Positions 42,833-51,900 of a stretch of 64,000 nucleotides of DNA are shown in pieces. Location of the stretch: assembly GCA_977030845.1 (NCBI GenBank), contig OZ365118.1, positions 3,348,001-3,412,000 of the forward strand, written 5' to 3'. Position numbers and translations under genes: made by a program. The notes beneath the pieces are model-generated. The model saw nothing but the letters and a program-made list of their open reading frames with translations, ran no database searches and was not told the DNA's origin. Position 1 is the first letter of the stretch, and the number at the start of each line of letters is the position of its first letter. This DNA comes from Fimbriosthenelais zetlandica (taxonomy: Eukaryota).

Positions 42833-45800
42833 TCAGTCTTCAAGGAAGAAGTAGTTCCCAGATTTCTTCTGTTCTACGTCCTGAAAAACAAAGCAATATT
42901 GTTAAAATTTATATATGTGCATAGAAATATCAAAGCAATTAATAGTGTTTCTAAACTATGTGTATGTGAAAGACAAACCAATATACAAATACAATTTAAT
43001 TCAAGGTTTCTCAATTCGAAAAGAGTAATACATTTGAATAAGTACAAACCTTGACTGAGTTTCGTTTGTTGATCCGTGGTCGCAGGTTGTTTGGATCCCT
43101 CCTTATCGTAATCTCCATGGACTTTAAGAATTTGTTCATGCCGTGAAGCAGGTTAACAGGACTGGAAAAAAATAGACAAGATTTGGTCAAGAGATCTTTG
43201 CAATGGTACAACATAAAGCTAACTAAAAGTCTCATATAACAAAATGGAAATTTTTTTTAAATAAAGATTATTTAGTTCTCATAAGGGAAGTGACTGAAGC
43301 TCACCTATTAGCGGTAGCATGAAGTGACGGTGAACCTTCAAACACTATGACTTTATCAGCCAGGTAGGTGGCCATGATGAAGTCGTGCTCCACGACGAAG
43401 GCGGTCTTCTTGGCGTGTAGGATGAAGCGTTTGATGACCTTGGCGGCGTGGAGACGCTGCTCAGAGTCGAGGTAGGCGGACGGTTCATCTATGAGGTAAA
43501 CATCAGCTGGTTTACCCAGACACAAGGTGATGGCCAGACGCTGTAACTCTCCTCCCGACAGGTTCTGTACCTGTACAACAAAATATAATTATTTTAATTT
43601 TGTTTTACAGTATTAATCCGGCATCCATTTCAAAGTGTTTTTTTTTATTTATTACTAGAAAACCAATAATTTTGTAACAATTGTTTTCTCTTAAATCCAC
43701 AGTTAAAATGCAAATAAACAAACAAAAAAATGAATAAATTTTAACAAATATAGGAGCCCACCTGCTGGTCGTAGAGGGCCTGTAGTTGGAGGGGTTTGAT
43801 GACGTCACTGATGAACTGTGGGTTCATGTAAGCCTCACAGGTCTTAGCGTGAAGTAACTGACATACGGTACACTCAGTCTTAGGGCTCACCTTCTGAGGC
43901 TTGTAACTCACGTTCAGCCTCGGTACCTCACCCGCTGTTAAAAATTAAATTAGAAAATTGAAATATAATCTATTATGTCGAGAAATGCTGAGATCATTTC
44001 ATTAGTAGACTTTTATTCTCTTTTAGATTTCTTATTCTCATTTAGATTATCAAATCATAAAGTGTTGTTATGGTGTTTTAAGTTTTTTTCCACGACAATA
44101 TTTCACATTTATAAAGTTATGAATATAATTATGAACACTTACCGCCCTCGTCGGGCTGTAGGCGGCCCGCCAGCATTCTGATGAAGGTAGTTTTCCCGGT
44201 ACCGTTCTCACCCAACATAACGATGATCTCAGAGTCTGAGAATTCTCCTGATTCAACCTTCAAAGTGAAGTCACCTAAAAATAAATATACAAATACAAAT
44301 ATTATATCTAGTTATCTAGAGGTGCCCAAGTTTTTGATTCTTTAAATTTTATATTAGGGACGAGCGCTAGTCTACGTGCTATTTGGCAATGGTAATTTAA
44401 ACCAAGGTTAAATGTAAGGAAATTTGGGATGTAAAAGGAACCAGAAGTTGAGTAACTGACCTAGTGTTTTGACCATGGTGCTGTAGGTTTGATGGTGTTG
44501 TCGGTGGATCGTTTCGTCCTCAGCTCTCCGTGACACATCAAATGTGAGAGCATGGTCCCGGAACCGCATGTTAGCCGTGGGTATGTATCCATCCAGAAAA
44601 TGATTGATCCCTAGAAATTAAAATTTGATTGATTTAAAATAAATTTTAACAAATAACACTAGAGATTCTAGATAAATTCGAGTAAATTAGCAATAAGTCT
44701 CAATAACAGGCATGAAAAAGATCAGAAATTTTATATTGAATTCTTAAGTATTATAACGTACCTTCTCTGACGCCGGCGGGTTTGGTGACGATGCCGTATA
44801 CGCCTGGCATGCCGTAGAGACAGGAGATGAAGTCAGACAGGTAGTCTAGTATAGCCAGGTCATGTTCTACTATAACCACATACCTCTCATCATCCAACAA
44901 ACTCCTGATAGCCAGAGCCGCCTTCAACCGCTGCTTCACATCCAGGTACGACGACGGCTCGTCAAACATGTAGCTGAATAACAAACAGTTCATCTTTATT
45001 TTACTTTTATTTAACTAACAAGAGAAACCTTTTATTTTTAATCACAAAACAAGGTAAAAGTACAGAGCAATTTAACAGACCCACATCTTATGATTATTTT
45101 TCTTCCTTTTAATATAAAACAATTTATGTTTAAATCACAATATACTGAAGAATACTTTCCTCTGTAATTAAACAAGACAAATCTTTAAGTTTCAAACTAC
45201 GAATAAGTAAAATGTGGCATATTAATTTTTCACAATTTGAGCTTCAATACTTACATGTCAGCTTGTTGGATACACACCATAGCGATGGCGAACCTCTGTA
45301 ACTCTCCGCCTGACAGATCCTCCACCTTGTGATCCAACAGATGCTGCAGGTCTGAAAGTCAAATATAATAATAGATTTACATGGATTTGCCACATGGCAA
45401 AGCATTTGGTTTAGTATATGTTTGATATCCTGAGACTTACCTAGCATTTCACAAACTTCACGGAGGTTTCCACGCTCATTCTTTCTTTGTAAATGATCTC
45501 CTAATCGTCCCTGAAACAATACAAAGGTTATCATTTTAAGAAAACAGCTTAATAGAAATTTAACCATAAAAATAATAAAAGGAATATGCAATTGATGAGA
45601 GACAGCCTACCTGTACAGCGCGGGGGATCTGGTCCACATATTGAGGTTTGATCAGAGCTTTAAAGTTACCCATCGCCACCTTAGCGAAATAATTCTGTAA
45701 TCCCGACCCCCGGAAACTGGCCAGGATCTCCTTCCATTCTGGAGGCTCCTGTAATAAAGATATAATAGATTTCAAAATTTGATACATTTTATTTTCAATT

Positions 45801-48924: not shown

Positions 48925-51900
48925 TCAGTCTTCTAAGAAGAAATAGTTACCCGACGATTTCTGCTCAGTATCCTGTAGAAAAGACAAGAAAGTTTAGTTA
49001 CAATAAAATCACAAATTTAAAAAGTACACAGCTTCATTTAAAGTAGTGGTTTTAGATTATAATTCTTAGAATTGAGAATTCATTCAGAAAGAAACAGGGA
49101 ATTAATAAAGTTAATTTTAAGTTAATTTTTCTATAAATTTAACTGACCTTGACTGAGTGCATCTTGTTGATGCGTGGTCGGAAGTTGTTTGGATCACGAC
49201 GGAATGTGATTTCCAGGGATTCCAGGAAGCGGTTCATACCGTTCAACAACGTCTGCGGGCTGGAAAAGGTAGAGAGAAGGCGTTAAAATAAAGCATCGAA
49301 CACAATAATATTAGTCCGCAAATTATTCTCATTTAACAAAGATAATTGTAAAAAAGAGCAATATGATAAGCCATTTCTTAGCAATTCTTATATAAATTAA
49401 TCTAAATTTAATTAAAGATAAAATAAAATTACCGCCCTAGAAATTAAATTAACATAAAATTAATATCAAATTAAAAACATAAAATAATAATTAATTCTAA
49501 ATTTACCTGTTGGCGCAGGTATCGACAGAGGGGCTTCCGTCGAACACAATAACTCGGTCAGCCAGGTAGGTGGCCATGATGAAATCGTGCTCCACGACGA
49601 AGGCGGTCTTCTTGGCGTGTAGGATGAAGCGTTTGATGACCTTGGCGGCGTGGAGACGCTGCTCAGAGTCGAGGTAGGCGGACGGTTCATCTATGAGGTA
49701 AACATCAGCTGGTTTACCCAGACACAAGGTGATGGCCAGGCGCTGTAACTCTCCTCCCGACAGGTTCTGTACCTGTAAAACAAAATATATATAGGTTTGT
49801 TTAATTATCAGAAAACAGTACAATGTTCTTCTACCACAGAATAAACACCAAATTGTAAAATTTGCTTAATTAATAAGGTGCAAAGATATTCATATGGATA
49901 TGAAACTAATCTATTATTTACAAGACTACTTAAATTACATCAATTGGTATATTATAAATTTACTGAAGCTACATCAAATTAGAAGTACATTAAAAGTTTA
50001 AAATTTATGAAACAGTGTTCGCTTTTTGAAGTTCAGTTTAACCAGTGCACCTGTATTTCCAGACAGTCCCCAACTATTTGAGGTTAGGTTTTTAATGAAT
50101 GAACACCTACCTCCTGATCAAAGAGCATCTCTATCTGGAGGGGTTTGATGACGTCCGTCACAAACTGAGGATGGATGTAGGCGTCCCGGATCTTGTCGTG
50201 TAGTAGTTGACGTACAGTGCCCGCGGACTTGGGGCTGATCTTCTGAGGCTTGTAACTCACATTCAATGTGGGCGCCTTGCCTGAAAATTCACACAATTTA
50301 TCACGATTTAAATTATGTTCCTTAAATTACAAATACGTCGTATATGAAGGTTGGTTTTTATCCTGTAAATTCATTAATGCATCTCTGGAAGAGCTAAATT
50401 AAGAAAATGGTAAAGTAAATATGCTTTTATCAATAATTAAAATTATTTGTTAATTTAGAAGCATCTTACCGCCCTCGTCACGTTCTTAAAGTTATGAATA
50501 TAAGTATGAACACTTACCGCCCTCGTCGGGCTGTAGGCGGCCCGCCAGCATTCTGATGAAGGTAGTTTTCCCGGTACCGTTCTCACCCAACATGACAATG
50601 ATCTCAGAGTCGGTAAACTCTCCCGGGTTCACGGCCAGCGAGAAGGAGCCTGGAGAACGGAAAAATCAATCATTAAAATCAAATTAAATATATTTATTAA
50701 ACAGGGTGGGGAGATGAAAATATAAATAATTAAAACCAAAAATATAACTTTAAACGTCAAATGAAGTACTGACAAATGCCAAGAGAGCACCAATGTTTTA
50801 CGTACCCAGCTTTTTGCCCATCTTGGGGTACTCGTAGCGACACAGTCGTTTAATCTCCTCCTCTGTCGCCGTCTCAGCCACTTTGAAGACCAGGGAAGTC
50901 TCACGGAACCGCAGGTTCTCCGTGGGTACGAAACCGTCAAGGAAAATGTTGATACCTAGCCGAACAATTAAAGTAACAGATTTAATATAAGGCATCTCCC
51001 ATGTTGATGGAAATATTCAAACCTCAGATTTTCTAATTGTCAAAAAGAGGGATATATTCAAATCTCTGTTTTCGAAGTGTCTTATATTATTGAAAATTCA
51101 GTTATAATTTATTAGAATAGATCTAGTTGAAAGAGATCGTTAAGACCTACCTTCCCTCACGCTGAAGGGCATAGTAACGACACCGTAGGCTCCAGGCAGG
51201 CCGTACAGACAGCAGATAAAGTCAGACAGATAGTCAAGTACCGACAAATCGTGCTCCACTACAATAATGTACTTATCAGCGTCCAGTAAACTCCTGATAG
51301 CCAGAGCGGCCTTCAACCGCTGCTTCACATCCAGGTACGACGACGGCTCATCAAACATGAAACTGTAGAAACAAATTTATATTTAATTAAAATATTACTT
51401 AATTGATAGAATAAATATTTGGAATAGTAAAATTAGTTTCCAAGAGAGGCTCAATATTTAGGGGAAAATGTGGATATTTGCAAACGTGCAACAGAGAGTT
51501 CAAAGGTATTTGTCCAACATATTCCATCTAGGGAAATCGTTAAGAGAGACAAACAAATTAAATATTAAAACTTACATGTCGGCATTCTGGATGCAGACCA
51601 TGGCGCAGGCAAACCTTTGTAGCTCTCCTCCCGACAAGTCCTCTACATTACGGTCACGTACGTTCATCAAGTCTGAAATATTGAATAACTCATTTTAACT
51701 ACTATATAAAAGGACAAGCTTGAAACGGAGTAATTTCCTTGATTCTGATATTCAATTTTTCACAATTTCAAAAGAGAAAATTTCGCCCTCACCGAGCATT
51801 TCGCACACTTTCTTCTGCTGGTTCAAGTCATCTTTCTTGTCTAACAATTGTTGTACCGATCCCTTGACAGCTCGGGGGATCTGGTCCACGTACTGAGGTT

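Follow-up and report, generated by a model that had tools for sequence, protein, structure and literature searches.

How two neighbouring genes that have diverged to the point of silent-site saturation can still share short segments of nearly identical DNA, intron bases included, is the question raised by a tandem pair of ABCE1/RLI genes in Fimbriosthenelais zetlandica. ABCE1, a ribosome-recycling gene, ranks with the most strongly conserved of eukaryotic genes and is usually present as a single copy. The pair lies on contig OZ365118.1 of assembly GCA_977030845.1, within the forward-strand stretch of 64,000 nucleotides from position 3,348,001 to 3,412,000 (hereafter the window, whose own numbering is used throughout), and all comparisons between the two genes were made on the assembled sequence of this window. 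We refer to the divergent paralogue as A and to the canonical paralogue as B (Table 1). The three tracts in question (~232, ~134, and 72 nt, each differing between A and B by 1–3%) are most likely the product of non-allelic (interlocus) gene conversion between old tandem ABCE1 paralogues, with a placement along the gene that would be non-adaptive.

The case for conversion begins with the silent sites. Outside the tracts, 166 of the 276 codons specifying the same amino acid in both genes differ (60%), as do 61–69% of four-fold sites, and with a dN of 0.25, the dS is undefined by the NG86 method and reaches 1.68 by LWL85; silent sites in these regions are saturated. Inside the three tracts, the equivalent codons differ at only 1 of 20, 2 of 29, and 2 of 70. 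Runs of 51 and 23 consecutive identical synonymous codons were recovered, with P < 5e-5 and 4e-4, respectively, under a conservative shuffle, and the third tract retained P = 0.0008 after removal of the main segment. The edges of the tracts are sharp, with the adjoining 60-nt flanks mismatching at 21–41 of 60 positions (35–68%), and the tract pairs were the best direct repeats in a repeat search over 40–55 kb.

Two of the tracts extend beyond coding sequence. Tract 1 reaches ~17–19 nt into the upstream intron (18 of these 19 nt are identical), while the intronic part of tract 2 can be read either as 31 nt with 1 mismatch or as 40 nt with 4. When the A region was compared with the entire window by sensitive blastn, the only matches returned, apart from these tract edges, joined exons of A to exons of B; no intron or intergenic similarity between A and B was seen beyond the tract edges, and no third ABCE1 copy that could have acted as a donor was present in the window. 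A first-pass annotation of this DNA had already reported the mismatch counts of the tract cores (2 in 220, 1 in 107, and 2 in 72 nt) and the continuation of tracts 1 and 2 into introns, and both were recovered upon recomputation, with our gene models placing ~17–19 and 40 intron nucleotides inside the respective tracts. Its account of the remainder of the genes was likewise borne out, both in the saturation of synonymous sites and in the differences at 15 of 46 and 15 of 23 residues noted for two exons, which correspond to A exons 5 and 6. It had further argued that protein-level selection is unable to preserve third codon positions or intron bases. This holds for the 51 identical synonymous codons and the intron bases enclosed in the tracts, and conversion is therefore the natural reading of the silent and intronic identity.

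The identity of the two genes is clear. The gene models were built by hand from stop-to-stop fragments, BLASTP comparison of A and B fragments, and splice sites, and GT-AG borders were found at every intron of both models. Both translations carry the two iron–sulfur (FeS) cysteine patterns, CX4CX3CX3CP and CX2CX2CX3CP, of an N-terminal double 4Fe-4S domain, and the Walker A, Q-loop, signature (LSGGELQR), Walker B, and H-loop motifs of both nucleotide-binding domains (NBDs) are readable in each. The exons of A and B matched the Pfam families Fer4_RLI, Fer4, and ABC_tran, and their best solved-structure (PDB) matches were to ABCE1/RLI. The proteins are identical at 444 of 601 positions (74%) and the coding sequences at 72.8%, while the introns cannot be aligned. 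Eleven introns are nonetheless common to both genes, at matching positions and in equal phase, and the duplication was thus DNA-level. The two genes lie in tandem and in the same orientation, 2.1 kb apart, an arrangement that is permissive for conversion.

Table 1. Features of the ABCE1/RLI locus, in window coordinates
Feature	Position	Strand	Description
Gene A	42833-46784	minus	Divergent ABCE1/RLI paralogue; 14 coding exons, 601 aa, start to stop, ORF (open reading frame) intact
Gene B	48925-53062	minus	Canonical ABCE1 paralogue; 12 coding exons, 600 aa, ORF intact
Tract 1, copy A	43356-43587	minus	NBD2 signature, Walker B, H-loop; codons ~461-531; plus upstream intron
Tract 1, copy B	49558-49789	minus	3 mismatches in 232 nt against A
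Tract 1 core, A and B	43356-43575; 49558-49777		2 mismatches in 220 nt
Tract 2, copy A	44103-44236	minus	NBD2 Walker A, codons ~372-402; plus 40 nt of downstream intron
Tract 2, copy B	50478-50611	minus	~134 nt
Tract 2 core, A and B	44112-44218; 50487-50593		1 mismatch in 107 nt
Tract 3, copy A	44899-44970	minus	NBD1 Walker B / D-loop, codons ~240-263; wholly exonic
Tract 3, copy B	51288-51359	minus	2 mismatches in 72 nt against A
Extra 15-nt exon-end and donor string	50465-50479	minus	In B intron at edge of tract 2
A exon 8	44762-44973
A exon 10	44143-44274		Hand-built model
A exon 11	43762-43934	minus	Between tracts 2 and 1; intermediate silent divergence
B exon 9	50111-50280	minus	Counterpart of A exon 11
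A exon 12	43305-43570		Hand-built model
Extra A intron	46239-46391	minus	Codon 64, inside FeS domain
Extra A intron	45511-45610	minus	Codon 182, after PRAV(Q/K)
B exon	52494-52677	minus	Undivided at A's extra intron
B exon	51793-52000	minus	Undivided at A's extra intron
ORF of 451 aa	40241-41596	plus	Intronless; just downstream of A

We propose that A and B arose when ABCE1 was duplicated long ago at the DNA level, in tandem and in the same orientation, and that double-strand break repair templated by the neighbouring paralogue would subsequently have homogenised three short segments within the 3′ half of the genes. The tracts would end where homology fails, be it at the border of an intron, a little way into one, or in the interior of an exon. 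Given that near-identity is needed for conversion to start, segments that are identical would stay convertible, while the remainder would have escaped. Such self-perpetuating islands would merely happen to coincide with long, highly constrained motif blocks, and repeated GC-biased conversion would have raised GC3, the share of G and C in the third position of codons, within them.

The edge of tract 2 preserves what appears to be the footprint of one such repair. The window contains three copies of a 15-nt string made up of an exon end and its splice donor (GACGAGGGCGGTAAG), where zero are expected: one at the exon end of each gene and a further one within the B intron. The identity between A and B ends exactly where this extra copy starts, with a 2-nt overlap, and B carries a copy-specific 48-nt rearrangement at this tract, spanning 50465–50512 in its intron. 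In the sequence of events that we envisage, a break in the B exon would have been repaired from the A template, through the exon end and ~45 nt into the A intron, after which the new end would have been rejoined to B via the 2-nt microhomology, thereby duplicating B's own exon-end and donor string; the downstream copy of the string would be B's native exon junction. The last event at tract 2 probably copied A into B in this manner and was closed by end joining.

Whether conversion happened once or repeatedly can be approached through base composition and through the exon lying between tracts 2 and 1. The GC3 is 0.74 in the tracts versus 0.53–0.55 in equally conserved but unconverted codons of either gene (p ~0.001), and with amino acids controlled, 83 GC-ending codons were observed in the tracts versus 62.5 expected (P = 5e-5), all three tracts contributing to the excess. 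In A exon 11, 14 of 36 same-amino-acid codons differ, versus the background of 166 in 276, a weak difference (Fisher p = 0.019), and this exon is possibly an older, eroded conversion. We favour recurrent conversion over a single event on this indirect evidence, namely the GC3 excess and the intermediate state of A exon 11: one copying event cannot raise GC3 above the backgrounds of both donors, while repeated GC-biased conversion can. Furthermore, it is implausible for conversion to start at 65–70% identity, which makes it probable that the islands were at no time free to diverge. The recurrent ectopic conversion between old, intact paralogues that the first-pass annotation had put forward is thus supported by the pattern of identity, and its recurrence indirectly by GC3 and A exon 11.

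The alternative that fares best is that one recent, complex repair event, by template switching or patchy heteroduplex repair, made all three patches. The tracts do lie within 1.7 kb of each other, their mismatch densities are similar (3 in 232, 1 in 107 for the core of tract 2, and 2 in 72), and the microhomology junction at tract 2 indicates a non-canonical resolution. However, the ~65–70% identity found elsewhere is too little homology for such an event to initiate, the GC3 of the tracts lies above the backgrounds of both genes and hence beyond the reach of one copying, and the silent divergence of A exon 11 is intermediate. We consider a single event unlikely. Several points do weigh against recurrent, non-adaptive conversion as we have set it out. 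The three tracts do not differ statistically in mismatch density, such that their ages are inseparable; the GC3 excess could come partly from codon selection at critical residues; the A-to-B direction at tract 2 depends on one footprint; and searches with fragments of A exons 12 and 8 gave no relative with both copies for a grouping test.

The placement of the tracts invites an adaptive explanation, in which selection favours conversion of the ATPase cores as a shared motor, while conversions in the FeS, helix-loop-helix (HLH), and hinge regions are purged as these surfaces specialised. Every tract indeed overlies ABC motifs (the NBD2 Walker A, the NBD2 signature, Walker B, and H-loop, and the NBD1 Walker B), A is intact and constrained, and the purging of conversions that erase paralogue-specific residues is a recognised idea (PMC3728101). 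In its fuller form, selection would maintain the conversion because A is a specialised (e.g., tissue- or stage-specific) recycling or rescue factor whose NBD2 catalytic site must stay matched to that of B, and conversion would even return A sequence to the essential B.

The distribution of the tracts and of the remaining divergence argues otherwise. The NBD1 Walker A block (codons 97–132) retains 88–92% protein identity, but its synonymous codons are identical in only 18–24% of cases; for the NBD1 signature block, this figure is 35–38%. With both blocks unconverted, half of the engine has not been homogenised, and this pattern does not support the proposal of the first-pass annotation that conversion is restricted to the catalytic cores and keeps a shared motor. 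Its companion proposal of different docking surfaces finds no support in the divergence of the domains themselves. The amino acid identity outside the tracts is 0.80 in the FeS domain and 0.77 in hinge 2, so that these surfaces have diverged less than the NBD parts outside the tracts (0.62–0.75), and the lowest value (0.46) is that of the inter-NBD linker, which is also the region least conserved in distant homologues. Across bins of general conservation in distant RLI proteins, the A/B identity rises from 0.45 to 0.97 (r = 0.45), A and B agree at 97% of positions whose conservation in these proteins is 80% or higher, and A-specific departures at highly conserved positions number three only. 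The divergence of A follows general constraint. Tract 1, in turn, also spans the moderately conserved codons 493–516 (outgroup conservation of 0.54). Selection in favour of core conversion appears quite improbable in light of these observations, and the maintenance of conversion for the sake of a specialised A is doubtful to the same degree. A homology-dependent, self-reinforcing process would explain where the tracts lie without any selection for their placement.

An assembly or polishing artefact, in which the sequence of one paralogue was replaced in conserved exons by that of reads from the other, was also considered, given that short-read polishing can homogenise very similar paralogues. 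Among exons of equal protein conservation, however, those left unconverted are only 62–67% identical in DNA, far too little for cross-mapping; the tracts, at 72–232 nt, have sharp edges inside unique sequence; residual mismatches persist within them; and B carries its own 48-nt rearrangement at tract 2. An artefact is very unlikely on these grounds. The chance that nucleotide-level selection (on the choice of codons, on mRNA structure, or on an embedded element) preserved the tracts without conversion is next to nil. The tracts are rich in GC3 and do coincide with the protein blocks under the strongest constraint, but they include intron bases and an unbroken run of 51 identical synonymous codons beside saturated ones, an Rfam scan of 42000–53500 returned no family match, and equally constrained blocks are saturated.

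As to which of the two copies has changed, we compared A and B against three sets of outgroups, consisting of distant or chimeric full-length RLI proteins from a search of representatives, and counted 51 versus 9, 38 versus 13, and 20 versus 7 changes unique to A and to B, respectively. Judged by these counts, A is the derived, fast-evolving copy. It is still under purifying selection, and B is the canonical housekeeping copy. The unconverted part of A exon 8 is 67% identical to B versus a median of 67% to the ABCE1 of other organisms, while the equivalent part of B (in B exon 6) is up to 98% identical to the ABCE1 of other animals. Searches with the fragments of A exon 12 and exon 8 matched distant animals only (best 89–94% and 80%, respectively) and returned neither an A-like orthologue nor a match within this genome.

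Some further observations were made on these homologues. In the unconverted part of A exon 8, residues in the stretches LAIL.., PGVYGI, and KPAG match archaeal RLI and not the eukaryotic consensus, and an archaeal structure was marginally the best PDB match for this exon. In another organism, the ABCE1 ORF equivalent to exon 8 contains an internal tandem duplication of ~33 residues (DYLSDF...VREGN), which inflated its search score. We also noted short annotated ABCE1-like proteins in Physella acuta (a 'protein Pixie-like' of 105 aa) and Lymnaea stagnalis (140 aa), which may represent either incomplete additional copies of ABCE1 or gene models that were cut short. Reviews may understate how common extra ABCE1 fragments are among invertebrates.

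The exon structures of the two genes differ at two points. A is interrupted by two phase-0 introns, one following codon 64 and one following codon 182, that are missing from B, where the corresponding exons are undivided (Table 1). These represent either two precise losses in the canonical B or two gains in the divergent A. Just downstream of A, on the opposite strand, lies the intronless ORF of 451 aa; an exact look-up of its product with three alternative starts found no record in other assemblies.

The pair is a natural case of long-lived conversion islands in an essential gene. Trees or dS-based dating of A and B will mislead unless the tracts are masked, and the edge of tract 2 provides a tidy footprint of a repair that would have begun by homology and ended by end joining. 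In this last respect, Richardson and Jasin reportedly described, in 2000, coupled homologous and non-homologous repair of double-strand breaks, in which synthesis-dependent strand annealing begun by homology is ended by end joining. Like that repair, tract 2 has one end in a homologous exon and the other at a 2-nt microhomology junction that duplicated recipient sequence; unlike that experimental system, the case here is read from a single evolutionary footprint.

The majority of animals have one ABCE gene (PMC11190730), and pairs of paralogues are documented in Arabidopsis (ABCE1/ABCE2) and in rice, with two copies in catfish and mosquitoes (PMC6088178). The locus resembles these in having a second ABCE gene alongside an essential one, and differs in that A adjoins B, is strongly diverged, and is partly homogenised. 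A literature search returned no paper linking ABCE1 with gene conversion. The pair offers a clean instance of an established process in a family where conversion had not been noted, and it calls for no new mechanism; the functional design that had been proposed for the conversion finds no support, and nothing found marks the swapping as a special adaptation.

Mosaic, identity-dependent conversion between tandem paralogues is itself well described (PMC3966223, PMC3728101, PMC10503786, bioRxiv 10.1101/2025.10.29.685298), with examples that include Caenorhabditis paralogues (PMC3966223), GOT1 in Tigriopus (PMC3728101), a model of HMA4 (bioRxiv 10.1101/2025.10.29.685298), and teleost duplicates (PMC10503786). 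The ABCE1 pair shares with these cases the tandem, same-orientation copies, the short and sharply bounded tracts of near-identity, the dependence on identity, and the islands of divergence beside islands of identity. It departs from them in a background that is fully saturated, as befits a very old pair, and in one tract edge that bears an end-joining footprint. GC-biased gene conversion is said to have been described in mammalian histones and Hsp70 by Galtier in 2003 and Kudla in 2004. The converted segments of A and B are, like those of the histone and Hsp70 genes, higher in GC3 than the unconverted parts of the same genes, although here the effect comes from three short tracts of one gene pair rather than from a gene family.

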